Origin: Lepidodermella squamata
Taxonomy: Eukaryota; Animalia; Gastrotricha
NCBI GenBank assembly: GCA_047495785.1
Contig: JBLDXI010000054.1
Span: 3,162,001 to 3,226,000, forward strand
Direction of reading: 5' to 3'
Length of the DNA: 64,000 nucleotides
This document shows, piece after piece, positions 28,560 through 64,000 of this stretch (position 1 is the stretch's first letter; each line of letters starts with the position of its first letter). A model generated the notes under the pieces. It searched no databases, was not told where the DNA came from, and saw only the letters and a list, made by a program, of their open reading frames with translations. The position numbers and the translations under genes were made by a program.

Positions 28560-29520
28560 AAAATCCGCACACCGACTTGAAGACTCGAACAATGATGTAC
28601 GACGGCATCATCGGGTCGAAGTTCAACTACTGCGACGCCGTCATCGATCAGGGCTGCAAGACCCAGCTGGATCGACTTCAACACGCGCAAAACAAAGCCG
28701 TTCGTGCCGTTCTCGACGTCAGTCCTGACGTGCCCGCCGATGAAGTTCTCGTGCGATTGCGATGGGTGAATCTGCAAGGCAAACGACTGGTCCACCTGGC
28801 TACAACCATGTGGAAGTGCAGCAGGGATCCTGAGACCCCCGAGGCACTCTCGTCGCTAGTCAAGCCGATGAACCAACAGCATGACCACAACACTCGAGGC
28901 GCCGCCACCGGGAAGTACGTCAAGCCATCGTGCAAGCTCGCCACAGGCCAGCGCTCGTTCCCAACCAAGGCCATCCAGTGGTGGAACCAGCTGCCAGCGA
29001 AGATCAGGCTGTCCGCTTCCACAAAGGCGTGCCGGCAAGCCACGCTCGAATTCCTACGCGAACAGGCCAAACACGACGCCATCATCAAGGCGAATAGCGA
29101 GCGAAAGAAAAAGGAACTCAACGCCTCTCTGCAGCCGCAGGTCGCGTTCAATCCGTACTCCAAAGCCGCCTTCGTCTACAACTACGTGCCGAACTAAATG
29201 AGTTTTCCAAATTTCTATTTATATTTTTCAAAGCCTATACTCAACCAAATGTAATATACTTTTATTTTCTTTATAGCTCCGTCATTAAATTATCTTATAT
29301 TTTGGCTCCGTGAATTACCTCTTGTAAATTATCTCTACTCTTGTAAATATTCCTCCAAACTAGTCTTTTGGTAGCTTTCTTGCTACGACGGCGTTTGTAG
29401 GCTTCGCTGAGTGAGTGGAAAAGCCACCTGGGCAGTAATGCCTGGGCCCTGGAGAAACAGTCAGCAATAACTGGAGTACCAGGGGTAGGGATTTCAATTA
29501 TGTAGTTATTAAACCAGTTC
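28560..29520 (+). mobile_element. 5'-truncated non-LTR retrotransposon (CR1/L2-like): RT C-terminal region plus 3' UTR
   Basis: ORF 28577-29197 has YCD, LDRLQHAQNKAVR, RLRW, HNTR, QRSF and WNQLPAKIR, typical of CR1/L2-group ORF2 C-termini. It is GC-richer than its flanks, and the 3' UTR has a CCTGG...CAGT...ACTG...CCAGG stem (~29441-29483). No RT catalytic core lies upstream. Confidence 0.8.
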
Positions 29521-37944: not shown

Positions 37945-38670
37945 TGACATTTTTTTAGCCGGTATCTCCTGGATTTTTATTGCTACACAAACACACACGG
38001 TTGTTGAACGCAGCGGTTTTTTACATGATAGCAATATTATTATTATTCTGTGGTAAAGACTGTCTATCAGTTTCGTTGTTTCATTTTATCTGTTGGCTCA
38101 ATAATTCCTATGATGACGATGATGGAAATAAAATGGAAGATGCTATTGTTTGTTATTGTTGTAATTTCTTCGATCAATCGCCAGTTTATAGCTTTGGAGG
38201 AGGTGTTTACGGCTGTAAGGCCTTGCCTTTGTGGTCTTTATAAACGCAGAGTATGCCGCCGGGGTCGTTTCTATCGCTCGGAACTGTTGAAAATAATAAA
38301 ATATCGTAAAATTTGGGACTTGATTGAAATAACCTTATTTGATCGTGAGCTGTCTAGAAAAACCGCCGAATCAAACTCAAAATTCGGCAATATGGCCACA
38401 GATGAATCAAATAGGAGAATCAGGACAACGATGAAAAAGGTCTCCATTTTATCAAGGTATAGTTATAAATTTCATCGGCATATTCGACCGGCTGGAGTTC
38501 GAGCTAATTTCCCCACACATCCTGTCGTAGAACCTTCCTGTATAACTTCTCATGCGTCACGAGTGGCAAATTTACAGCCTTAAGTATATTTTATGCGATG
38601 GCAAACTTTATTTCCTGAATGTGCGCTATGCAATTCATAGCTATAATTCATTGCGGAACGGTCCACAGTT

Positions 38671-38982
38671 TTATATTTGACGTAGTCGCTTTGATTGGTC
38701 AGCTATCAGAGGACTTTTTGGTAGCTGGTGCGATTTAGCCATTACAACCGTCTTGACCATGGGTTTGTATTTGCTTAGAAGTTTAGTCCAAACGGGGCCG
38801 GGTAGTGGCTGCGATTGGCGGGAATTGACGACTGCTGCGTTTAGGGCCGCGCGTAGCTGCTCACCGGGCCCCTTCAGCTTATTATGACCACTGCTCTTAC
38901 TGATGTTGTCTTTCATAAATGCCGATGTTTCATAAGTTAGCAGAGCTAGAGATAAAACAATTGTGCTGAATTTTGAGGCCAT
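38671..38982 (-). CDS. Small secreted basic protein, orphan (cluster gene A, 103 aa)
   Basis: Signal peptide MASKFSTIVLSLALLTYETSA; shares the WTK..KPM..VV..KS motif with gene B. Confidence 0.75.
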   Translation of the reverse strand: MASKFSTIVLSLALLTYETSAFMKDNISKSSGHNKLKGPGEQLRAALNAAVVNSRQSQPLPGPVWTKLLSKYKPMVKTVVMAKSHQLPKSPLIADQSKRLRQI

Positions 38983-39375
38983 GTTGAAGCGTTTTCAAAG
39001 TCGCAAATGCCCGGCATTTCGCTTACGCAGAATTGGGCGTAGAAACTCAGGAAGCGTAATGAACTGCGAAACCAAGACGGAACCGATTTTTAATTGCATT
39101 CTGTATATAGTATTTTTGGCTGTCGCGCAGAGTGGGCTGCGGCTCCACGCGCGAATTTTTCAACTCGAGTGCAATTTTATTCATGCTTCCTAAAATAAGC
39201 AGTAATGACATTACTTCTCTCCAATATTTGACACTAATCCAATAAATGACGCCTGAGGTTGAATCAAGGACCTTTTGGCTATTTTAGTATTCAATCCCAG
39301 AACTAAGATTCTTTGCCAACATTCTAAGGTTTATTTTATCCATCTATGACAAATTTAGAGGGATGTGCAAGAAAA

Positions 39376-39707
39376 TTATGTGCGTTTATTGTAGTCAAAA
39401 GAGGGTCGCCATTGCCTGCCCGCAAAGCGAGACTTCGAAAGCACGACAACTCTCTCCATCGGTTTGTGCCGTCTCTGAATTTTCGTCCAAATTGCATTAG
39501 AATGTTGCTGTAGGTATAATCAAAATTCCAAGCATGAGCAATTTTCGTAAAAAATGAAATAAAAACCCTGACCTCTGCGGCGTTTGGTGGTATATCCATG
39601 GATTTTTTCCAAACATGGCTGCTACTAACGTGATGGGAGTTGATAAATGCCGCGGAAACGGCTGTGAAACTAATCAAAAGTATCGCAATGGCAAAGCCAA
39701 ATTTCAT
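39376..39707 (-). CDS. Small secreted basic protein, orphan (cluster gene B, 88 aa, 2 exons)
   Basis: Signal peptide MKFGFAIAILLISFTAVSA. A GT-AG intron at 39572-39508 gives exon 2 QHSNAIWTKIQRRHKPMERVVVLSKSRFAGRQWRPSFDYNKRT*, which is similar to gene A. Confidence 0.78.
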
Positions 39708-40485
39708 TTTGAATCCGATCTATTTTCAAGTTTTCAAGTATAGTAAGAGCGAAAACGAACTTTGACCGCTTGCTACTTCTTTTGTGTCGTGAGTCTGCAT
39801 TAATTATTTTCTTCTCGGGATGGTCACTAGAGAATTGATAAAGGAAGAACTGACCGGAGAAGGCGGAAGTGAACTTTGATGGCTTTCTTTCATCATTTTA
39901 CGCGGGTCGGGCCGAGAGAGACCTGAGATCATACAACTCAAATAAAGGGCGCATTTTCGATGTTCAATTTACTGACCAAGTCTAATAGACCCGTTTCATC
40001 GTCGTGGGCGTCGCTGTCGTATTGGTCATCGTCGAAAAATTCCCTTAAAGGGGTGTGACCGAAGTCATTCCCATAATTTAATGACGCACGATTATAACAG
40101 ATTAAGTCTGGACCAGTCACGCCTCCGCCGTTTATGAATTATAAGTCACCTGATTCTGAGAATTAAAAAAATTAGGATTTAGGATAGGACAAAACTCACC
40201 TTGGATCACGAACTGACTTTAATCTCGCTCCGTATAAGACAATTACTTATAATAAAATGATTTGCAATGAATATTTCTTCAAAAATTCAAGTAAAAAACA
40301 AACAGAAAAAGACGAAAAATAATCAGTCACTAACTTTTTTATTTGCTGTAAAATCGAATCAATATCCTGCCTTCATTGAATTTATTTCAATGCAGTTTTT
40401 ACTGCATTACCTAAATAAAAATTGCAACCTGCGCGGTATAAAAGAGTAATTTAATGTCTCAGCAATTCTTGGGAGCCGCAGTAGC

Positions 40486-40794
40486 TTAGACCAAGAAATC
40501 TTCCCAATCATCGGCCCAATTTGCGCGCGATTGTGCGGCTGGCTTGTGAATGAAATTGCGAACAGCAGCTGATTTAGTTCCGACAACTGAATGGTGGGGC
40601 TGGACGTCATCCGAGTCGTAGGGCGACGCTTGATTTCGAGCTTGCCGTTTAAATAGTTCCTGATTAACTTGTTTCTGCAGTAGTTCATCCAGCAAATCGT
40701 CCATTTTCAAAACTTTCGCCGATTTCGTCTCAGCAGCGACGTAGTAGATCGAAAGTGAAGCGATGATAACGAATAAAATTGTAGTTGGATGCAT
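40486..40794 (-). CDS. Secreted prohormone-like precursor, orphan (cluster gene C, 102 aa)
   Basis: Signal peptide, acidic pro-region, KR followed by Q (FKR/QARN), and Trp/Asp-rich end NWADDWEDFLV; TATA-like GTATATAAAG ~70 bp upstream. Confidence 0.75.
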   Translation of the reverse strand: MHPTTILFVIIASLSIYYVAAETKSAKVLKMDDLLDELLQKQVNQELFKRQARNQASPYDSDDVQPHHSVVGTKSAAVRNFIHKPAAQSRANWADDWEDFLV

Positions 40795-41397
40795 TTTCGT
40801 GGTAGTAGAGTTTATCGAAAGCTCTACTTCTGATTTTGATGTAAAAAGCTAAAAATGCAAAGCTTTATATACAGGACAATGCCTAATATTTCTGGGAAAG
40901 ATTTCGTGGTACATCTGTCTGGAAATAAATGTGGGATGATTATAGGTATTCGGCGTCTATAAATGGATCCCAATTGACATTCCTGTCATAAGGGTTGAAA
41001 TCACGCAAATTTGATATTTCCAGTTACGCCAGGAAAATCGCGAAAGCCCACCCTTTCCTAGAAATTCTTGCCATTTTAAGCTTTTTCGTCCTCATAACCT
41101 AATCAAGCACACTTTGCATAGGACAGTTTCATTTCCCGCGAGTTATGAACTGGAAAAACCTAATTTATTTTGAAAAAAAACGACAGTCGCTCATACAGGT
41201 AATCAAAACTAATCAAAAATGATTCGGAAGAAATACATAAAATGGACTGCTTTAATAAAATCGATATTTTTTCTAGGCCTGCTAGTCAAATAATAATTGA
41301 TGGTTAGTGCCGCGTGACTTCCATAGTGATCCCGACGGGCGACAAATTCGCACCTGATTTACGCTTGATAAAAAAAAATCGCAATCAGCATTCTGTT

Positions 41398-41823
41398 TCA
41401 GCCGAAATGACGCATGGAAGCTCGCGGGGGCTTTGTTGTCGACTGCTTATTGTTCATTCGCAACATTCGACGCACGCGGTTACGCAGCTTCTGATAGTGC
41501 CGCAATTTAGCGATAATTGACAGGTCCGGATCCGTCAGCAGCAAGAGTTCGGGCGACAGGATTTTTACGTTCGGCTTGCCAATCGCCACCAACAGGCGCT
41601 GTTTGGCATTCGCTAGGTCGTCGATGTCGTTTTTTACGACAACAGGTCCAGCTGGGATGGCTCGCCCTGACGTCTGAAAATTTAAAAAACACATGCGTCA
41701 GAATTTAAAAGTATTAAGGCTGGTTTTACTCACTGATTTATTGAGTCGAATTCTTTCGACCGAAAGGTCACCAACTACAGCGACCACCAGCATCGATGAA
41801 ATAATTGTGACCTTGTAAACCAT
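41398..41823 (-). CDS. Secreted neuropeptide-like precursor ending in Gly (cluster gene D, 121 aa, 2 exons)
   Basis: Exon 1 MVYKVTIISSMLVVAVVGDLSVERIRLNKS, 60-nt intron 41733-41674 (gtgagt...tttcag), exon 2 ending ...KPPRASMRHFG*. Confidence 0.75.
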
Positions 41824-42324
41824 GAGGTCTCAAAATTGTCCAGAAAATATGATTTATGAATTGAAACAAAAGTCTAAATAATTCGAAGTCGCCTAAGTAA
41901 TTTTTATTCGGAAATAAAAGTAGAAAACGTAACGGAAACTAACCAAGTAGCAGTTTTCGAGTAGGCGGCTCGCTCTTTCACTGCTGGTGCGCGTCTTTTT
42001 ACTTTTGTTTCCTTATTATTGAATTTACTCGTGATCGTCATCGTGATTCTATGAATAGCACATGTAAAACCGCGCTTTTTAAGTTGGATTGCGTAGTAAT
42101 TCGGGTCCCCGTTGAATCTAATTCAACTGTTGCATTATTCACGCCGGCTTCTTCAAATCCCAATCATCAGCACTGCCTAGGGATTTTCATTTAGTCAAAA
42201 CAGGTTCAAGTGGTCTGCGGATTGGGAAAGTTCGACAATTTAAAAATGTCCCATAAGCAATCAATATCGAGAAATACGCCATGATGCCAATTTTATTGAT
42301 TTTATTTATTAAGACGGAAATTCA

Positions 42325-42624
42325 TTATCCAGCACGCATTCGGCTTGCCGATGACAGTGGTTTGGACTTCCTCGCCAGCATTTTCAGATTGTCTTCGCGA
42401 GAGTTGAAGAGCAACCCGATCATTCTTCCGATTTCGGCGACAACATTGCTGGCGCCATTCCGTCTTTTCACCATCACATGCTCCGGAATCAGATCGGTTT
42501 TCTCGAATCGCGATGTGCTTTCTGGTATTTGCTCATTCCTGCCGAGCTCTTTAGTCGATGCAACCAAATTTGCTGCGGAAATCAGAACGATTAAAGCAAG
42601 ATGAGACGAGTAAAAAATGTTCAT
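42325..42624 (-). CDS. Secreted neuropeptide-like precursor with amidation signal (cluster gene E, 99 aa)
   Basis: Signal peptide, spacer, KRR site, then a 43-aa peptide NGASNVVAEIGRMIGLLF...ASRMRA followed by G*. Confidence 0.8.
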   Translation of the reverse strand: MNIFYSSHLALIVLISAANLVASTKELGRNEQIPESTSRFEKTDLIPEHVMVKRRNGASNVVAEIGRMIGLLFNSREDNLKMLARKSKPLSSASRMRAG

Positions 42625-43279
42625 TGCGAAATAAAATCAGGATTAGGGGGCATTAAAATATAACTTATCAATAAGCCATCCCGATTCACCTATATCCTAT
42701 TTCGATCAAATGTCACTTCCTACGTCGATTTACTATTGCCAAAGCCAGGACTATTTGCTTTTTTTCTGCGAAATTACCAAGTTGACAGGCTGTTCAAATT
42801 GGACCGTAAGTTACAAACAAAAAATTATCGCAGGTATCAAGGATGCATTGATATAACACATATTTTAATTGTTTTCAATGTCACCCTTCAACGTCTGCGT
42901 CTGATTGAATAGGAAAATCAAGATAGCACCCGTGAGTATCGAAACCGGACTGCTGGCGCTCATTCAAAATGACCAATTAATAAAGACTATCTGCAATATT
43001 ATCTATACCTATGCAATATCTGCAATGAGCACTTTCCTTCCTTTTCAAGAATTAAGAATATTACGGAGGCTTCGTCAAAAACATCATAATCATAACTTTG
43101 ATCATAATTTGGATGGTTAATATGCATCTGCTAAGCAGTGTTATAGTTGTTGTTGGTACAAAATAGCAAGTTTATGCTGGCATAATTTACTACTACTTGG
43201 ACCTTGGACCGTTAAAAAACTGCTTCAACTCCGTCTTAATTGATCACACAAATTATAGCGCTATTATACTTAGTGCTAT

Positions 43280-44110
43280 TGTTACGACCCAAGTCCGAAA
43301 GCGACCACATCGCGGTCTGGTCGACCAGACCCCGACGGGGCATTACTCGTGTTCCACGTCGCGCTCTGGTCGACCAGGATGCGACGGGCCTGCAATCTCT
43401 CTTATCAAACACCTATGTCGGGCTTCGGCTCGAAGGTGTCGACCGAGGTACGGTGGGCTCCAAATCGAGAACAATGGACGCGCGCGCGCATTGTCCCGCC
43501 GTGCTCTGGCTCACACGCGCGCGCATGAGCCAGAGCCCGACCGCGCTTATTGACTGAATTGAACATTTTTTTAATTAAATATAAATTTACCAAAAAAATA
43601 GCAAAGTCGCAAGCTGTATGTCTCACGCACTGTAGTCAAATGATCTATTTTCAGCGCGCCTTAACTGACTCACGATTTTTTCCGCTTGTTTAATATTAAT
43701 AATCGAGCCTTTCTCAAATATTCCGTTATTTTTTTACTCAAGCTGTGAACGCTCAGGTGCTAATAGACGCTTAGAAATACACTGTTTCTACTTCGCTTCC
43801 ACTTGGATAAAAAATAGAATGACTAGTAAAAAGTAGAAATCAAACGCAGTCGGGCTCTGGCTCATGCGCGCGCGTGTGAGCCAGAGCACGGCGGGACAAT
43901 GCGCGCGCGCGTCCATTGTTCTCGATTTGGAGCCCACCGTACCTCGGTCGACACCTACAAGCCGAAGCCCGACAAAGGTGTTTGATAAGAGAGATTGCAG
44001 GCCCGTCGCATCCTGGTCGACCAGAGCGCGACGTGGAAATCGCCTATAGCCACGTCGGGGTCTGGTCGACCAAACCGCGATGTGGTCGCTTTCGGACTTG
44101 GGTCGTAACA
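43280..44110. mobile_element. Non-autonomous DNA transposon with ~265-bp TIRs, TGT...ACA ends and 4-bp TSD (Ginger-like)
   Basis: 43280-~43545 is the near-perfect reverse complement of ~43845-44110; termini are TGTTACG/CGTAACA; CTAT is duplicated at 43276-43279 and 44111-44114; the core is AT-rich and non-coding. Confidence 0.88.
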
Positions 44111-44503
44111 CTATCGCGAAATTGCGAACCTTATTTTTCGTCAATAATAACAGTTTGAATTTCTATAAAAATTTCGAAAAAGTAACCAGCGTATTCCTCG
44201 TGAACTCCTCTGTCTGGATCTATCAACCAAACCCGCGAAAAAATCGAAACCGCCGCAAAACCAATCTAACAACAAATCTAATGTTTATTTACTTTGTCTC
44301 CACGCTCTGATGAATCAGCTGACCACATGACGCCCATAGCGTAGCACCCTTTTCTCGTGAGTATAAGCTGTCTATTTATGTCTATGATGGCGAGTTATAT
44401 ACAAAGTGTTTGTGAAAGGTGGTACTGAATTCTCCTACAAGTCAGAAAGATGTCATTTCGCCAAAATTTCCACTTTCACTTGAGAAAAACTACGAGCAAC
44501 ATC

Positions 44504-44822
44504 ATGCAAGTAACTAATTACTCAATTGCAGGTAAGGGTCAGACATATTTATATTTGAATGATTGACTAATTCGCAATTTTCCAAGTTGCGTGTTTGGCC
44601 ATTCTGCTGTTATCCACAGAAATTTTCGTCAACGGGCATGAATCTTTCGCTGAAAATCTTCACAGGCACATGAACTTGCGGCGAGTGAGGCGCCAATTCG
44701 AGCTAGAACCGTGCTGCTTCAAGTATCCGCCAAGCGATCGCGACAGTGGAAGCGAGAAAGAAGTCTCATCAAATCCAGAAAGCGAGAACTCTGAGGAAAC
44801 CACTATTTCCACTCGACGGTGA
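44504..44822 (+). CDS. Secreted prohormone-like precursor, orphan (cluster gene F, 87 aa, 2 exons)
   Basis: MQVTNYSIA/VACLAILLLSTEIFVNG signal across intron 44532-44586; furin site RRVRR, then QFELEPCCFKYPP and an acidic tail. Confidence 0.72.
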
Positions 44823-45087
44823 AGTTGATGCAGTTTGGACGATGGGCAATCAGTTCATTTCGATTAATTAACAAATATTGTTGTTTGACTGATGTATTTG
44901 ACTATGTTTTATGCATAATGTGACTTCAGAGCCCGGGATAACTGGGATAATTTCGAATAAAATCATCTTAACGCAACGTAACACGCAAATGGTAGCATAA
45001 TATCTTAGATTCCAATGGTTACCAACAAGATATAGCCTAAACTAAGTACTCCATATGACTTGGTTTTCTATACATTCAGCCTCTAAA

Positions 45088-45477
45088 ATGACTCATCTCC
45101 GGCGATTTGGTAAGAAATACAAAGTTCCATGTCGCAGATTTCCCTCAGTCATGATATTTTTAGGTTGCTGTAGCGTCGCAGTCGCATTAATTTCGCTCAT
45201 CGCCGAATGCAGCACGGATTCTGAAGTTTTCCTATCTGGAAAGCGAACTTTAAGCAAGAGGCAGTACCAAAGTCCAAACGTTGGCCCTTTCAGTGCGTAC
45301 TACGGTAGCTGGGGATCGCCCTTGTACATAACCGGTGGCGGCCCGGAAAAAGATGATGCCATCGCTTTCAGATACGGTGAAATAAGCTCCGCTGGAACTC
45401 TTAAAGTGAATTTGTTCCTTTCCATGCTTGAATATGTTCTTGTTATTATTTTTGGCGTATTCCGTATTAAAAATTAA
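45088..45477 (+). CDS. Secreted prohormone-like precursor, orphan (cluster gene G; 3' end uncertain)
   Basis: MTHLRRF/GCCSVAVALISLIAECST across a 54-nt intron (45110-45163); GKR and KR sites, then QYQSPNVGPFSAYYGSWGSPLYITGGG...AFRYG. Confidence 0.6.
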   Translation: MTHLRRFGKKYKVPCRRFPSVMIFLGCCSVAVALISLIAECSTDSEVFLSGKRTLSKRQYQSPNVGPFSAYYGSWGSPLYITGGGPEKDDAIAFRYGEISSAGTLKVNLFLSMLEYVLVIIFGVFRIKN

Positions 45478-46589
45478 CGTTCGAAATTTGGTTTTGAAGC
45501 ATTGTTAATAAAATCGATGTGCCTTTGAAGAGCTATTTCAAATTCTCTCCCCGTTCTCTTAACTGCGTTCTTTTTATTGGCGCATTTACATAAGATTTTT
45601 CATTACGGTTTACCATCAGCTCAGAATAAAGTCATACACGCACACATACACACAGTTCTGGAAATAAACAATGGGCGCTGTTTCTTACAAACTGAGAGAT
45701 GAAATCGAAGAAATCGGCCTCTGCAATAGCGATCAGAACCTGCATTTTTCGCCCGGGGTAATCCAGCGAAGTATTGGAGGCTCGTTGTTCCTCAATTCCT
45801 CAAATTTCCACGATATTTGTTTGAAATCTGAGCTGATGTTGGCTTCCTTAAAGAAATTGAAAATTCAGCGAATTGCTCGAAAATCTCCAAGGTTGATTGG
45901 GCCAAGACCGAACGAAGCGAGGATCTAGGTGTTTTGCAATATGTGCTGGTCAAACAATCCTCTTTGTCAATCTGGAATATGATTCTTTCATGAACTATGC
46001 TGCCCCGTATGCCGTAGGTCACGCGGGTCGGTTCAAATTCAGTTCAAAATTTGAGATTACATGCGGCAACAATGTGGATCGTAATGCAATAATTTTCATA
46101 CATTTTTAATTTAAATACAAATATATGTATTTTGTGTTATATTTAGTAGTTATTTATAAAATGTTTTCGTTGATTACGAAGCTCAGTGTTGGGACTCTGT
46201 GAACTTTTTTGCGATCTTTGCCAGGTGACTAACGAGAACGAAATGTTAGATGTTATATGCTAGGAAGTTGGTTGCTGTAGAAGTTACGTTGATGGCTACT
46301 TCTTATCTTCTTTGGGGCAGTTACCTAAACCCTAAATCTGTTGACTTTTGAGGGAAGATGGAAACTAGAGCTTCAAAAATTAATGTATTGTGTGTTTTGT
46401 CCCCATAAAATTGTCATGATCTCATTGATCTCATTCACAGCATACAGCTTATCTATATTATTCCATCTGAGTAATTCTAGCCACTGGCCACGCTCCACGT
46501 ACTACCCCGACTAGTTTTCATGTGTAACACAGCGGAATTCTAATCTACTGGTGACTGGTGTATCAGCCTTAAAGTAACATATGAAGATC

Positions 46590-46755
46590 ACAACTACCGG
46601 AAGTTTGGTATCCTGATGTGGCTAGTGCAAAAGACATGGCGTTGCTCCGAGATCTCGCCAGCGACCGCAACGGATAGCGGCGACTGACTGCCCGAATTTG
46701 TGCCTCCGCGCTGAAGGCGGCGAAACCCTCGCAAAGGGTGTAAAGCCGTAATCAT
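46590..46755 (+). mobile_element. Degenerate 3' end of an RTE-like LINE
   Basis: Translates DMALLRDLASDRNG*RRLTARIC (TAG in place of TGG), matching the A.DR..WR motif at RTE ORF C-termini, followed by a short hairpin ACCCT-CGCAA-AGGGT. Confidence 0.5.
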
Positions 46756-46764
46756 CGGTGTACC

Positions 46765-47136
46765 CCGTGGCGTAGATAATCTCAATTTTTTAGCGTGCCA
46801 GGGGTTGCACGGTGGCGCCAAAAGCATCATTTAGGGTAGTGTCAATTTTGTTTTGGCGCCACATGCCATTTTGGGTAGTGTCAATTTCGAAGATTCAGCT
46901 ATTAATTTTGTAGTTTCTTCTTATGTTCTAAATGATCAGTCCTGATGAGAATCTTGAACATTACTAGGCTTCTAAGGGAATAAGTTTCTCAAGAAAAAAA
47001 AGAAAAATTGGCGCCACCTGGAAAAAGTGTAAGGCCCCCCCTGTGGGTCGCTTCGGCGCGGCGCCAATACCCATTTAGGGGGGTGAAGACTGGGGTTGAT
47101 CGATCAACCCTTCGCCACCCCTTATCTACGCCACTG
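46765..47136. mobile_element. MITE, hAT-like termini
   Basis: TIRs CCGTGGCGTAGATAA / TTATCTACGCCACTG (14/15 match); flanking direct repeat TCGGTGTACC / CCGGTGTACC; internal duplicated GGGTAGTGTCAATTT and several GGCGCC motifs. Confidence 0.78.
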
Positions 47137-47444
47137 CCGGTGTACCTATCAGTTTTCTGTAGAGGCTTGTTTAGGTTATTCTGCATTTCCACGATTGAAG
47201 CATTCAACAAAGCTTTAAAATTGCATTGTCGAATTTCGAATTCATTTGAAAATGGGAAATCACAGCCGAGGGCAATGTAGGTCTATTTCATTTATGTTAA
47301 TTCATGTGTAGCTAGTTCAGATACTTGACTTAACATGATAATATTGAAATCTGTTGCATTAGGTGCTCGTTTTCTATACTATTTTATATTATAAGTATTA
47401 GTCAGTGTTTGAATATATTTTGTTTGCTATTTAGATAATAGAAA

Positions 47445-56835: not shown

Positions 56836-59800
56836 ATCCTCAAGTCCCGGGCTATACTCGGTATCCGGGTAATTGCCGGGGGTTCGCTGTATCAGGGCCG
56901 CGGCCTGTTGCGAGGCCGAAACTGTGCGCCCAATTGTGCGACATGACTCCGGAATGCCGCGGATTTTCTTACTCGCCTTACCGCGGCGATTGTATCCTAA
57001 AATCACAGGCCTGCGACGACCCAGAGTCGTCCGGCCTTTACGTCTTCTTCGCTAAAATGACCGACAAAACCGCATCGCCAGATTTTGGTTAGCTTAATTT
57101 TGACATAAGCGAATATTGGAATGCCCGCCGATATATTACCGAATCAAGAATTAGACAATTTTTACCGATTTTAAGGTGGAATTTATCAAACACTTAAAAC
57201 GACCAGTGTCCTGTTTCAATTAACAGCATTGAATCTCTTGGTCTCCAAAGGAATTTTCTGATTTTTTTTTCACTTGATTTGGTTGCCAACATTGGCCTCG
57301 CCGCGCATGAATTAGAATAATGAACATGTAATTTTCTCATATTTCCTAACAGCTCGGCATTTAGCGCAAGATTTCGACCCAAATGATCCGATCGCCACAG
57401 ATAAAGGTGGCGAAGACCAAGCGGCAGCCGAGGGTAACAATGACGAAGGTGAAGAAACTATTGAGGAGGATGTGGACGGCGAGGACGATGCGCCAGCCGA
57501 CCAAGAAACCGCCGAGCAGCCACAAGCGCCGGTGCAACACGACTCTGAAGAAGTACCACGCGTTCAAATGCCACCCGTTGACGTGCCGGCTGGGTACGAA
57601 GCCATTGATGGCAACTGCCCTGGTCACACGATTCCGCCGACTGCCTCGAAGCCATTAGCTGAGTGCGCGGATCAGTGTACAAATACCGCGAACTGCGCCG
57701 GTTTCGCCCACTCACATTTCAGCAACGTTTGCTTGCTGAAATCAGCCACGTGCGATAAGGCCGTTCAAGGAACCGAGTACCGATTTTATAAAAGAAGTAA
57801 TTTTTCAAGTTTTGATGTGACGATTTTTTTATTAAATTACCCATTTTTTTAAGTTGCATTCCGAGCAAGTGATGACGAAGAAGATGTTGACAGCAAGCCG
57901 CCTGGTATTAGAGCCAAACTGGTTCAAAGGTTCCCGCTCATGACGTCGAACAAACCCGGCATGGCTGGTTTCACGCGAGCTGACGGTGATTGCGTGGACA
58001 CGTTCGATTTGAATGAAACTGATTTTTCGACAACGATGCCGACAACGACTGATCTAGTGCCGACTGATAACACGCAAATGCCGATTATTATGTACGACCA
58101 GATCATGTTTGGCCCGGTCAATATTCCGCTGAAAGACTGTGCTGAGCGGTGTAAGGCGAGCCGGCAATGCGCGGGCTTGTCTTTCCGGTTCCGTGACAAC
58201 ACCTGCTTACTACGCACCCGGCCATGCGATTCAGTCATGCCTAGCGAAGGGAGCAATTTCTACCTCAAAGGTAAATTTTTTGAAAACCTTCAATTCTGAA
58301 TTGAATTCATATTTTATAAAAATTTGTAATTTTACTAATTTTATTGTTTGAACAGAAACTGAACCTGGTTTGTTTTAGTTTTAATTTTGATTTTGGTGAA
58401 ATCACATGCATGGGATCTTGAAAATCACTCATTTAAATTATGGCAATTTTTAATAATTTTTCTTTCAATTTTAGCCGCCATGTCTTGTGCTCAAACCAAC
58501 GAGGGAAGCGAGTTTTTGGTTGCTTTCATGGCCAACCGGGCTGAACAACCGGCTCAGCGGCCGTTGGAGGTGTTCATCACTCACCCGCACGATCAGTCGG
58601 TCAACGTCACAGTTTCATCGTCTGATGGTCGGGCCAATTTGACCGCCGTTGTTGAACCCTACGGCGTGCAGCGCATCGAAATCCCTCATGACTTCCGCTT
58701 ATCCGATCTCGAGTAATTATTTTAAAATTATTTTAAAATTAAAGATTATTTAAAATTTGAAAATTCGTAATATTTTGAGTTATTAAATTATTTACTAAAT
58801 TTACAATTATAATTTCTGTTAAATCAATATCAAATATTGAATTGAATATTGGGGAGAGTTACGGAATTTTTAAAATTTAATATTTTTCCAGGCGTGGTGG
58901 TATTGTTGTGGAACGGAAATCCATTCTGATCTCATCTACCGGCCCAGTTGTTCTGTATGGTGTCAACAAGGAATATTTCACCACCGATGCATTCTTGGCC
59001 CTACCTCGCCGATCTGTCGGCCAGCGCTACTACATCGCCTGCCACTTCCCACCCACATTTTTCTGCCAGTTCGCAGTTGCGGCAACTCAAGATAGCACTG
59101 AAGTCACGATTACGCTACCGAAATTCGGCGCAACCAAGTCTTGGCAGGGTCGCCAGCCGTTGGTCGAGTGCGGTCTGACGCTGCCTGATGGTCGCCGGTA
59201 CTCGAACGGAGACACCTTCCGAGTCCGCCTCAACTTCTGGGACGCGTTGCAACTGCAGGACAAGTGCGACTTGACCGGTACTTTGATCGTTTCCGACAAG
59301 CCGATTTCAGTGTTTTCGGGCAACTTGCGAAGCTCGGTTGGCGAGGGTACAAGCACCCGTGATCACTTGGTCGAACAGCTGGTACCAGTCTCCGGATGGG
59401 GTACCGACTGCGCCGCGGTGCCAACCCCGAACCGGACTGTAGGCGACTTCTGGACAATCACTGCCGCGGAGCAATCGACCGATGTCAGCATCCAGCAGTC
59501 GTCGGGCCGTTTGGAGCTAGTCCGCCTCAATGCTGGCGAGACCTACCGGATGCGCGCCGATCCTCGCAGCCCTATGCATATCGCAGCTAACCACCCTATC
59601 ATGGTCGTTCAATACGTGCACAGTCAAACTGACCCGCGCGAACCTGCCGATCCGTCCATGCAGCTATGCGTACCATCCGAGCAATTCGGCTTCGGGTACA
59701 TTTTCGCCACTCCGATGGGCGTTGCTACCAGCTATGAGAACTACATCACCATCATCATTGGCCAGGGCATGGAGAAAGATTTGTTGATTGATGGCAAACA

Positions 59801-62800
59801 CCCTGTACTGCTGGATAACCACCATTGGGTTCCGATCCCTGGCATGGAACTCGTCACGTCGTACATGCGTGTCGATCCTGGTTCGCACAGAATCACCCAT
59901 CCGAATCCGACGACCAGCTTCGCGGCTTACATCTACGGCGCCGGTGACCGTGAGAGCTACGCCTTCCCGACCGGTACCTGCCTGCACGAGGTCACGTGCG
60001 AGCCGTCGTTCCAGGTGGTTGGCGATGGTAAAGATAACGACTGCGACGGTGTTTGGGACGAAGAAATTTGCGGAGATAGCCAAGATAACGACTTGGACGG
60101 CTTGATTGACGAAGATTGCTACGACACCAATCATGCGGAACTCATGGTACCGCCATGCGGTGAGTTAATTAAAATTTCCTATATAGCCCACCTTATTTAT
60201 GTTATTTTTTTACCAAGATCCTGGAAGAACTGAAGGTCGCCGCTTCGTCATCATGTTCCTGGAGAACAAAGCCGACCAGCCCGCGAATTTGGACCTCGAG
60301 CTGTATGTCACCCAAGGCCCGGATGTGACGGAAGACGCGCTCGTAACCGTGACGACCCCGCTTTTCGACGGTCACTTCAAGAAGGTGCAACACCTGAACC
60401 CACGCGAGATTGTCACGTTCACCCTTCCGGCTGGTATGAAGCACGAAGGAACCGGCAAATCGAACAAGGCCATCCTCGTCGAAGCTACGACTGATATTTT
60501 GCTATCTGGCGTTAACCGAGAGCGATTTTCGAGTGAAGCCTTCGCCGCGATTCCGATTGCTGAGCTTGGAACTGAGTATTTCGCGGTTTGCTGGTACCCG
60601 ACTACTGAGTCGTGCGTTGTCGGCATCGCCGCGGTTCATGATGGCACCCGGGTTGATATCACCCTGCCCCCGAAACGCGACTCGAAGCAGCCATTCGACA
60701 TCGACGGCGTCCAGCGACCTGATGGCAACATCGTCTTGAATCTCGACCAGTTCGAAACCTACCAAATCGCATCTCTCACCGACTTGACCGGGGCTAGGAT
60801 CAAATCTTCGAAGCCCATCGCGGTTTTCAGCGGTAACAGCCGGACATCAGTCGTGAACCAGGCCTCGCTGCAATCCACGAACCATTTGATTGAAATGCTG
60901 CCGCCAACTTCAGCCTGGGGTAACATGTTCTACACCGTCCCAACGCCGCTTCGAACCGGTGGCGATGTTTTCGTCATTGTGGCGTCGCAACGCGGCACCC
61001 GGGTGCAAATCAGCGGGCAACAACAGGAGCTGTACCTGGACGAACCCGGCGTTTTCCGCCAAATCGAACTGCCATCAGCCTTCTGCGGCCGTATTCAGAC
61101 AGATAAACCAGTTATGGTTGTTCATTTCGTCAAAAGTCAACGGTATCACGACGACCCTGAAATCGGTGTACCAGCCATGTCGATCCTACCATCGGTACAG
61201 AACTACGACGTGCGTTATACGTTCACTACGACAGATTTCGCCTCAGCGTCCGGCCCGGGCCCGGATACGGATTTCACCAACTACGTGTTGCTGGCGATTA
61301 AGGGCAGCCAATCGAGTGGGTTGCTGGTCGACGGTGATACGATCGATGTTTCGCGGTTCAAGAACGTCGAAGGGTCCGACTACGTCTGCGCCGTTGTTCC
61401 GGTTCGGTCACGAGTCAGCCACATGGTTCAACACACCCTGGTCAATGTCCCATTCCTGGCGTTGGCCTACTCCCACAGCGCCCATAGCGCCCACATGCTA
61501 CCCATCGGCTACAGGCTACGGCTCAGCACTGGCTGCGTGAAATGCAAGCAGGTCAAACCGTGCGATGGCGTGGATAACGACTGCGACGGCCAGGTTGAGG
61601 AAGAGTTCTGCGACGGCGTTGATAACGATAACGACGGTCTGATTGACGAAGATTGCTGCGGTGGCCCGCCGAAGTGCGGCCTCCAGACAAGCGAAGGTAC
61701 TGATTTCGTGCTCATGTTCATGGAAAACCGACCTGATCAGCCGAAATTCCTGCCGCTCGAGATCTACGTCGCCACCAACTTCGTCGATGGCCCGGTTGAA
61801 GTTGAACTATCCGCCCCGCGTTTCGACTCGTTCGCTCCGGTTGTTCGGAAGGTCATGCCTAATGATGTTACCCTGTTCACTGTGCCGAATGTACTCCGTA
61901 TGACCCGAACCAGTATTGAAAATATGGGAATCCGAGTCCGAGCTGTTAATCCCATCGTACCGCTTGTTGTTTACGGAATTAACAAGGAAGCGTATACAAA
62001 TGACGGATTCTTAGGCCTGCCAACCGCCGCTCTTGGTACGGATTATTTCGTCGTAGTGTGGAACCCAGCAACCATCGGTGGCCAGTTCGGTATCGCAGCG
62101 ACTGAAGGTAATAACACTAAATTCATCAAATTTTTCAATAACTTGATTTTTTCGATCAGATGATACTCAAATCGATATCCAGTTTTCGAATCCGATGGAG
62201 GAACTTCGCGTTGTTTTCAACGGCCGTGCCTATTCGAACAATGATTTGTTGAAGATCCGTCTCGACTCGTACCAGACGTTTTTGGCTATCAACGAAGTTC
62301 GCGAGTCTGATTTGACCGGAACTCGCATCAAGTCGAACAAGCCGATCGCTGTTTTCAGCGGCAACATTCGCACGTCGATTGAATTCACATCCGGCAACCC
62401 GTCTCGCGACCATTTAGTCGAGCAGATCCCGCCAACCAGCGTCTGGGGCAAGAGGTTCGTTTCTGTTAGCACGCCTGGCCGCACTGTGGGTGACTACTAC
62501 AAAATCGTGGCGAGCCTCTCGAACACTTTCGTCACCATCCGAACTGCTGAGAAGTCGGAGAGCTACTTACTGGCGAAAGCTGGTGATTTCAAGCAAGTCC
62601 GCATCAAGTCGTCGACCTGTGCTTATATCGAGTCTGACAACCCGGTTCTTGTCACTATGTTCGTGCTTAGCCAGGACGGCTCGGATAACCCGGAAAAGGC
62701 CGATCCTTCCATGATTATTATCCCACCCATCAACCAGTACCGTATTCGTTACACATTTTCGACGACAGATTACGCCGGTCTGACCCCGGGACAGGGTTAC

Positions 62801-64000
62801 ACCAACTACATCATGATGGCGGTACCGAGCCGAAAGGTCAACGGGTTGTTGTTAGACGAACGTTCCGTCAAGTTGTCGAACGTTTATAAGGTGGCTGATA
62901 CTGATTACTCATGCGGAACGATCACGGTGCAACCGGGTCGTCACACCCTGTTGCACGCCGATCAGGTCACGCCTTTCATGGGTATTTTATACGGCGCTGG
63001 TGACCGCGAGTCCTACGCATTCCCGATTGGTATGGAGTTGAAAACTCAGACTAAGTGCTACCCTTGCCCGCAAAAGGAGCCGTGTGATAACATTGATAAC
63101 GACTGCGATGGTAAAATTGAGGAGGAGATGTGTAACGGTAAGGACGATGACGGTGATGGCCTTATCGATGAGGATTGTTGCCAGCTGTCCACGCCGGCCT
63201 TCGCTAAGTGCTACGACACCAAGACTATTCAGGCTTGCTACGGTGAAACTGCGAATTTCTCGTGTAATGAGGGCCAGTTCGTCAAACTCATCACCGCCCA
63301 TTTCGGCCGCATTGGATTCGCCGGTGAGTTGAGTTGCCGCTCTCCGAACCCGCTCAACTGCCAGGGTCTGGAGCAGTTCTGCGGTTTCAACGATGTCTAC
63401 GGCGTTGTTGAGGCTAAATGCTTGGGCAGATCGAACTGCTCGATTCAGGTTAATCAGTACTCGATGGGCGACGCTTGCCGAGGTTCCCCGTGCCAACTCT
63501 GCCACCAATACCTGCACGCGATTTACACCTGTATCGATGAACAGGACATGTCCTGCTCGATTCTTGCCAGTCGTGCGAATGGACCTGGTGGCGATAGTGC
63601 GGTTTCGTCTCGCTTCAGTGCTTCAAGCACGTTGTCAGCCTCAGCAATGGCTACAGCTAATCCGACCTCGCAAGATGGTGTTTGCTCATCGGTCATCCCT
63701 CAAGCTGGTGAGAAATGCCAAGCGCCTGAATGCACAACCCAGCCAAAGCCAAGCCCTATGGACCTCCACATTCCGGCTGCTGCAAGGTATGGCGTGAAAT
63801 GATTCATGTAATTTTTCAAATTTTACAATTTTTCCCTTCAGATTCTCTGCATCAAGCGTGCATTCGTGGTGCCCATCTTTCTGCGACCGGAATAACTCAT
63901 TCCTTCAAATCGATCTCGGAGGCCATTATGAAGTGACAGGTTACCTGATGCAAGGTGCTCGCGCCCATGAGCAGTGGGTTAGCCGAGCTGGTTTCGCCTA
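56836..64000 (+). CDS. Large extracellular mosaic protein: 3x PAN/apple, 3x (IgGFc-binding domain + DNDCDG repeats), SUEL/Gal-lectin, F5/8 type C; both ends incomplete
   Basis: PAN motifs CAQLCDMTPECRGFSY, CADQCTNTANCAGF and CAERCKASRQCAGLSF. FCGBP-type EGxxF...FMxN, DLTGTxIxSxKPIxVFSGN, DHLVEQ and ESYAFP motifs. SUEL motif CYGE...AHFGR...KCLGRSNC...YLHAIYTC. The last exon (from 63842) reads RFSASS..WCP...FLQIDLGGHYEVTGYLMQG...QWV (discoidin). First exon not identified. Confidence 0.88.

Follow-up and report, generated by a model that had tools for sequence, protein, structure and literature searches.

Lineage-specific prohormone genes are known to occur in clusters in planarians, which belong to the sister phylum of the gastrotrichs (PMC2953531). 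The planarian prohormones spp-1 to 19, with the Planarins (spp-6/7/8/9/17) among them, are small, lineage-specific signal-peptide precursors with basic cleavage sites, some of which lie next to each other and are divergently transcribed (PMC2953531). For gastrotrichs, peptide signalling is essentially undescribed in the literature. We have analysed a stretch of 64,000 nucleotides (nt) from the gastrotrich Lepidodermella squamata (contig JBLDXI010000054.1, positions 3,162,001 to 3,226,000 of the forward strand; below, the window), and describe a cluster of eight genes in it, called Z and A to G, that on the strength of their sequence are real, lineage-restricted genes for small, predicted secreted proteins. 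The cluster is like the planarian genes in all the features just named, its cleavage sites being predicted ones. It differs in that the Planarins are mutually similar, whereas in the gastrotrich cluster only A and B are, and in that many planarian peptides have been confirmed by mass spectrometry and in situ, whereas the gastrotrich cluster is known from sequence and RNA contigs. No sequence link between the cluster genes and the planarian spp genes was found. The published assembly of the species comprises 157 contigs and 122.8 Mb with 43.3% guanine plus cytosine (GC), and holds two quite different haplotypes (PMC11660948).

With middling confidence, we read this locus as eight secretory-pathway genes of a compact spiralian genome, each encoded separately, that form a mixed and fast-evolving cluster. 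In this reading, C, E, F, G and the end of D would be prepropeptides, and Z, A and B basic proteins that stay mostly intact. The genes, with protein lengths in amino acids (aa) and the coding sequence (CDS) where a transcript is available, are as follows:

38143-38447, minus strand: gene Z, a cationic (+5) protein of 84 aa with a signal peptide and without Cys, from exons 38447-38334 and 38283-38143 with a 50-nt phase-0 intron.
38671-38982, minus strand: gene A, 103 aa, one exon, cationic (+12), no Cys.
39376-39707, minus strand: gene B, a cationic (+10) protein of 88 aa, from exons 39707-39573 and 39507-39376 with a 65-nt phase-0 intron and a GTCAGG donor.
40336-40850, minus strand: transcript of gene C, with its CDS at 40794-40486; the 102 aa comprise a signal peptide, a pro-region that is acidic and helical, KR, and a 52-aa tail starting with Gln.
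41209-41882, minus strand: transcript of gene D, CDS 41823-41734 and 41673-41398, 121 aa, cationic (+14); RVRR site, C-terminus RHF-Gly-stop, 60-nt GT-AG intron.
42325-42624, minus strand: gene E, 99 aa from one exon, with a signal peptide, then a pro-region of acidic character, KRR, and a peptide of 43 aa before Gly-stop.
44504-44822, plus strand: gene F, a protein of 87 aa from exons 44504-44531 and 44587-44822, with a 55-nt phase-1 intron within the signal peptide; RRVRR, then a Gln-initiated peptide with a vicinal CC and an acidic tail.
45088-45477, plus strand: gene G, 111 aa; exons 45088-45109 and 45164-45477, with a 54-nt phase-1 intron; GKR site, KR, a Gln-initiated 38-aa peptide ending in FRY-Gly (Gly codon 45376-45378), then 32 codons that resemble a 3′ untranslated region (UTR).

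The original prediction had put seven short open reading frames (ORFs) of about 87 to 121 aa here, five on the minus strand (A to E) and two on the plus strand (F and G), and these were found at the claimed place, on the claimed strands and within the claimed range of lengths. The two-exon models that it had required for B, D, F and G hold as well, and the intron was seen in RNA for D and, weakly, for F. Its count of at least seven genes stands for those seven but overlooked Z, which lies on the minus strand just beyond the start then given for the cluster. Likewise, the description of some 7 kb with nothing but short ORFs is right for the ORFs themselves, but an inverted-repeat transposon of 831 bp is also present between E and F. 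A hydrophobic, signal-like N-terminus had been claimed for each of the seven; by a heuristic that looks for a hydrophobic core and small residues at positions -1 and -3, such an N-terminus is found in all seven and in Z (8/8).

A filter for ORFs of one or two exons and 80-160 aa, with a signal-like start and a hydrophilic body, was devised after the genes had been seen, and its scan returned A to G and Z together with two alternative readings (an ORF antisense to Z, and unspliced B). These are 8 signal-peptide loci in 7.75 kb; in 60 Markov-simulated regions the mean was 0.08, and the remaining 56 kb of the window gave only 3 matches to the filter. In a three-periodic coding model, which was trained on the long ORFs of the window and scored all six frames, the proposed frame was the best of six for Z, A, C, D, F and the core of G, and was tied for E. 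The window is animal DNA with short GT-AG introns (50-65 nt), and AATAAA or ATTAAA lies downstream of every stop codon in the set, in the case of Z as an AATAAA located 161 nt 3′ of the gene. Three other ORFs were rejected as genes, namely a plus-strand ORF at 38110-38583, which is an antisense shadow of Z with a non-coding score, the unspliced form of B, which was discarded on the coding model, and an ORF at 42281-42604 that is antisense to E. Between B and C, at 39938-40285 on the minus strand, there is a possible decayed ninth gene, consisting of a signal-like stretch that lacks an ATG and contains a TAA in frame, a 44-nt segment resembling an intron, and an acidic 60-codon ORF that scores coding-like, the pieces being mutually out of frame; this segment has no RNA, and its X2 sequence (see below) is identical.

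With respect to transcription, two sequencing runs cover the region, both aligned to 39420-45419, with A and Z lying outside that stretch. The first, X1, is counted here as RNA-derived because it skips the intron of D, the second, X2, is a DNA run, and contigs of this kind show presence, not absence or level. C is represented by an X1 contig (40850-40336) with 0 mismatches, and D by another (41882-41209), likewise with 0 mismatches, from which the 60-nt intron has been removed. The 55-nt junction of F occurs in one low-depth X1 contig with 27 nt on the short side, and a strand switch is recorded close by at equal depth; X1 coverage of E is patchy and low. C and D are clearly transcribed, and expressed in adults, and F is weakly transcribed. 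Co-expression of the cluster, which had been put forward for confirmation, gained no support: RNA support is very uneven, and the upstream regions of the genes have no common motif except TATA-like and AT-rich words.

The 5′ end of the C transcript carries a non-genomic leader of 23 nt, which a pattern search did not find anywhere in the 64-kb window, joined at an acceptor AG (40850-40849) of T-rich character, and this marks C as a gene with spliced-leader trans-splicing. Only some 23 nt upstream of this acceptor there is a TATA box, and C may therefore also possess a start of its own. The trans-spliced form may derive from a longer precursor, for example from a read-through of D. C thereby provides an example from the gastrotrichs, on whose spliced leaders we found no published report.

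Over E, F and G, the X2 data reveal a second allele. Its listed coding changes introduce no stop, and they leave the cleavage sites, the Gln residues, the terminal Gly and the splice dinucleotides untouched, which is compatible with live genes.

If the cluster is indeed a mixture of prepropeptides and whole basic proteins, the products of C, E, F and G would, after removal of the signal peptide, be cut by a prohormone convertase or by furin at KR, KRR or RVRR. Each of the four would free one main peptide of 38-52 residues, and the C-terminus of D would free one of 21 residues or fewer. These peptides would be capped by pyroglutamate (C, F and G, through glutaminyl cyclase) and/or amidated by PAM (E, D and possibly G), and, by analogy with the planarian secreted peptide prohormones, they might signal via G protein-coupled receptors (GPCRs) as neuroendocrine or gland products. 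Z, A, B and the body of D, on the other hand, would be released largely uncut, as basic proteins of 65-100 residues that bind anionic surfaces within a secretion. The shared neighbourhood could have come about through local duplication and rapid divergence, with no single demonstrated regulatory unit. The genes yield concrete, testable peptide predictions.

The reading is favoured by the excess of loci over chance, the RNA contigs of C, D and F, the coding scores, the second allele, the AATAAA or ATTAAA signals and the precedent of the planarian genes, and also by the processing marks, which the original prediction had ascribed to the cluster as a whole. They are present as KR followed by Gln in C and G, RVRR followed by Gln in F, KRR in E, and Gly before the stop in D and E, but A and B have no convincing marks. 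The only candidate in B, an RR, lies inside a motif that is conserved between A and B, and A has no site at that position. The genes with marks are C, D, E, F and G, whereas nothing beyond chance is seen in Z, A or B; by this criterion, C, E, F, G and the end of D have the predicted layout of prohormones.

Several points weigh against the reading. In composition-preserving shuffles of the eight proteins, a KR or RR site is expected in 5.0 genes and is found in 7 of 8 (P=0.11); KR occurs in 3 genes against 3.2 expected, and RxRR or RxKR in 2 against 0.64 (P=0.13). Two marks are modestly enriched and speak for the reading, a site followed by Gln (3 genes against 0.30 expected, P=0.003) and an amidation Gly (3 genes against 0.81, P=0.03), but they were picked for testing after inspection. 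The proposed frame of B is not the best-scoring one in the coding model, and B (39420-39707) and G are without any X1 coverage, such that the RNA check of the four introns confirmed that of D, supported that of F weakly and left those of B and G uncovered. The 13 listed coding changes of the second allele divide into 6 synonymous and 7 non-synonymous ones, which is no clear sign of purifying selection. There is no orthologue to show that the mature peptides are conserved, and for all genes cleavage, secretion, tissue and targets are what we infer from the sequence.

That dibasic sites occur at chance level, and that five of the eight proteins are clearly cationic, would also be expected if all eight genes encoded structural or accessory parts of one extracellular product, such as cuticle, adhesive, egg coat or mucus, with the basic sites serving furin-type trimming of pro-regions or being due to chance, and with no signalling peptide at all. 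We consider this rather unlikely. The proteins are neither repetitive nor of low complexity, and they have no Cys frameworks and no bias towards Tyr, Gly or Ser. Furthermore, Gln after the site and terminal Gly are enriched, and neither the lack of a common upstream motif nor the uneven RNA support fits components of one product.

The interpretation as a mixed cluster of secretory genes begs the question whether its members descend from one another. Local alignments of the mature regions were compared with shuffles in all 28 pairwise comparisons, and the similarity of A and B (z=9.35, P=0.0005) was the sole one that remained significant after 28 tests, whereas neither C-E (P=0.01) nor F-G (P=0.04) survived them. 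A and B have the motif WTK-x5-KPM-x3-V...KS in common, and because this motif emerges only after splicing of B, the gene model of B is supported. The motif is conserved, but no flanking cleavage sites are conserved with it. A and B are therefore the only demonstrable paralogues of the cluster, and a common descent of F and G is plausible. The layouts suggest two groups of genes: on the minus strand an intron is either lacking or, in Z, B and D, of phase 0 and placed behind the signal peptide, while the plus-strand genes F and G have their phase-1 intron within the signal peptide, together with a pro-region that is short, a basic site and Gln. By these comparisons the cluster is mixed and not one family. 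The description of the locus as a locally expanded battery of prohormones could thus not be upheld, since only A and B are similar and the dibasic sites are no more frequent than in shuffles.

An antimicrobial role had also been considered, in which the cationic members Z, A, B, D and E would be antimicrobial or cytolytic host-defence peptides. Their net charges, which run from +5 to +14, a basic helix predicted for D and a weak Ponericin match in A (E=0.15) are in keeping with this possibility, which we nevertheless regard as highly doubtful. No 18-residue window of the mature regions is more amphipathic than in shuffles (P 0.12-0.75), and the absence of an amphipathic helix beyond chance weakens the antimicrobial reading and leaves that part of the original prediction unsupported. 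The Ponericin score moreover is half of the cut-off, and there is no defensin-type Cys pattern.

A different possibility is that some of the genes are strongly diverged representatives of neuropeptide families already known. G would then be a precursor of the NKY type that, in this assembly or haplotype, has its C-terminus out of frame, and D a DH44/ELH-type precursor of two units that has degenerated. This overlaps with the mixed-cluster interpretation. In G, KR is followed by 38 residues ending in FRY and then by Gly, which is within the 33-43 aa [FML]RY-Gly requirement for NKY. Nemertean NKY has the same length as the peptide of G and is preceded by KK (PMC8557429 supplement). The peptide of G and Lineus NKY are of equal length (38 aa plus Gly), and we counted 10/39 ungapped identities by eye (P5, G8, P9, I23, G25, E29, FRYG). 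The layout of a dibasic site with a subsequent xR[YW]G is found in 0.06% of shuffles of G. G resembles NKY precursors in the dibasic site, the 38-aa peptide, GP[LF] near its start, [FW]GS, a Gly-rich middle and the FRY-Gly end. It differs from them in its short pro-region, in its Gln start, in the lack of an in-frame Lys or Arg after the Gly, and in the absence of a core with FW or WIWMP. The diagnostic NKY core motif is FW[RQ]P[LM]G or WIWMP (PMC6425005). Neither FW[RQ]P[LM]G[YG] nor G[YF]WIWMPAQG is present in G, which has QYQSPNVGPF and SWGSPLY, and we did not file G as NKY because these core motifs are missing.

The end of G is peculiar. NKY amidation takes a Gly followed by Lys/Arg or a stop, but in frame the Gly of G is followed by E-I-S, and a Lys-stop lies one base out of frame. 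The predicted ORF of 111 aa is present, but its last 32 codons look like 3′ UTR: they encode mostly hydrophobic residues in T-rich DNA (GC 0.32 as compared to 0.51 in the core), the tail scores like a 3′ UTR, and the best coding segment ends at 45380. Given the UTR-like tail and this shifted Lys-stop, it is probable that G used to end as an RY-amide precursor, or does so today in another allele. Over 44159-45419 the X2 contig falls 5 nt short of the window's length, with 3 deletions listed. As a further observation on this gene, its first site (45181-45192, plus strand) reads SEVFLS-GKR, and the X2 allele has SEVFLP-GKR, which closely resembles the units SEFLP-GKR found in EFLGamide/TRH precursors of nemerteans; in G it occurs in a single copy and may be due to chance.

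For D, the mature chain starts with DLSV, QRLL-x3-GK follows 43 residues on, and then come DLSII and a 41-residue stretch up to the terminal Gly. It thus has the N-terminal [DES]LS[VI] and the C-terminal [RK]L[LM]..G[KR] motifs, at a spacing slightly longer than in nemerteans, and this pair of motifs has a frequency of 1e-5 in shuffles. When set against DH44/ELH/CRF precursors (PMC8557429 supplement; PMC6425005), D is alike in carrying DLS[VI] twice, AN..QRLL..GK, units of about 41-43 aa and a terminal amide Gly. It differs in that neither unit is preceded by KR, GK is followed by Pro instead of forming GKR, the middle of unit 1 contains Pro and Gly, and there is neither a SLxALxD helical core nor a Pfam match. 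We did not assign D to DH44/ELH because the KR flanks, SLxALxD and a cleavable GKR are missing.

On balance, we think it improbable that G and D are diverged neuropeptides of these two types. The length and identities shared with Lineus NKY, the rarity of both layouts in shuffles, the exact stop of coding-likeness at FRYG and the DLS[VI] at the predicted mature start of D all argue for it. However, the tuning of both patterns was done post hoc, with the query in sight and dozens of families compared; G has neither the diagnostic core nor RNA support, and D is without the flanks and core named above, without a CRF or ELH match in Pfam and, for its exon 2, without a match among 1.84 billion proteins. 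A more far-reaching idea, which we deem very improbable, would be that D and G are degenerate copies of ancient DH44/ELH and NKY genes, which were copied into a secretory cluster and are being reshaped to non-neural secretion (pheromone or gland), the locus showing a small part of an expansion in which gastrotrichs gained hundreds of secreted peptides across the genome. Should it be true that G and D derive from NKY and DH44/ELH, they would show how neuropeptide genes decay or are put to new use within a cluster of secretory genes.

Searches for relatives bear on the view of the genes as lineage-restricted. Large protein collections were searched with C, exon 2 of D and exon 2 of G; spliced models were searched exon by exon, and joined models were used in local statistics only. 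For C, a word search of 5.8 billion proteins gave no relatives, a blank whose meaning is limited by the length window, and there were none by exact look-up or metagenome scan. Exon 2 of D had no match by phmmer against 1.84 billion proteins and none in the ESM Atlas or among PDB sequences. Its predicted fold consists of two helices at low confidence (AlphaFold, predicted local distance difference test score 61), and Foldseek found no PDB match for the model. For exon 2 of G, the ESM Atlas gave one 0.75 lead, below the usable range, and the word search was blank. E had no match among PDB sequences. Pfam returned no family for any exon of the cluster genes, apart from the sub-threshold Ponericin score of A already mentioned; D or pieces of it had no CRF/ELH match at E<=10 and only one weak, unrelated match, and an Rfam search gave nothing. 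The statement that none of the genes belongs to a family that can be named is thus in agreement with Pfam for all exons, and with the wider searches for C, exon 2 of D and exon 2 of G.

The neighbours on the two sides, and the transposon inside the cluster, are as follows:

Left flank of the cluster: BLM, with RecQ_Zn_bind/RQC/HRDC domain matches.
Right flank of the cluster: a FYVE protein, with a FYVE domain match.
43280-44110, no strand: non-autonomous inverted-repeat transposon, 831 bp, with TGT...ACA ends and a CTAT 4-bp target duplication.

BLM and LST2 had been named as the flanks, and both assignments agree with the domain matches; the FYVE protein we take to be LST2 on the basis of its N-terminus. 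Synteny between the two, which had been proposed as a check, did not lend support to the cluster. A metagenome assembly contains one close relative (79%) of the window's SYF2, whose other best matches are lophotrochozoans at about 55%. On that contig of a related animal (L001:300-8492) the order SYF2-BLM is kept, with SYF2 79% identical, and BLM is followed by a scaffold gap, two seven-transmembrane GPCR-like genes and a telomere of TTAGGG repeats; none of the cluster genes occurs there. The position of the cluster may therefore not be conserved. A metagenome scan with LST2 for synteny found nothing.

The transposon has arms of 279 nt that are 94% complementary. It is multi-copy, X2 shows a high depth, a joint of the empty site and loose ends at 43280 and 44110, and its TGT...ACA ends presumably fit Ginger-type DNA transposons. 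It separates the minus-strand group from F and G and is outside the gene set. A second multi-copy repeat fragment, with an X2 depth in the thousands, lies upstream of F at 44204-44363. Between G and LST2 there are an 85-codon ORF on the plus strand (45671-45928), with no signal peptide and no Pfam match, and GC-rich, repeat-like pieces (46590-47140). Farther along the window, a long plus-strand gene (58908-63802) carries repeated IgGFc-binding domains, by a Pfam match for its first ORF, and Cys/Asp-rich repeats, and a plus-strand ORF at 28577-29197 resembles, by eye, the C-terminal part of a non-LTR (long terminal repeat) retrotransposon protein.

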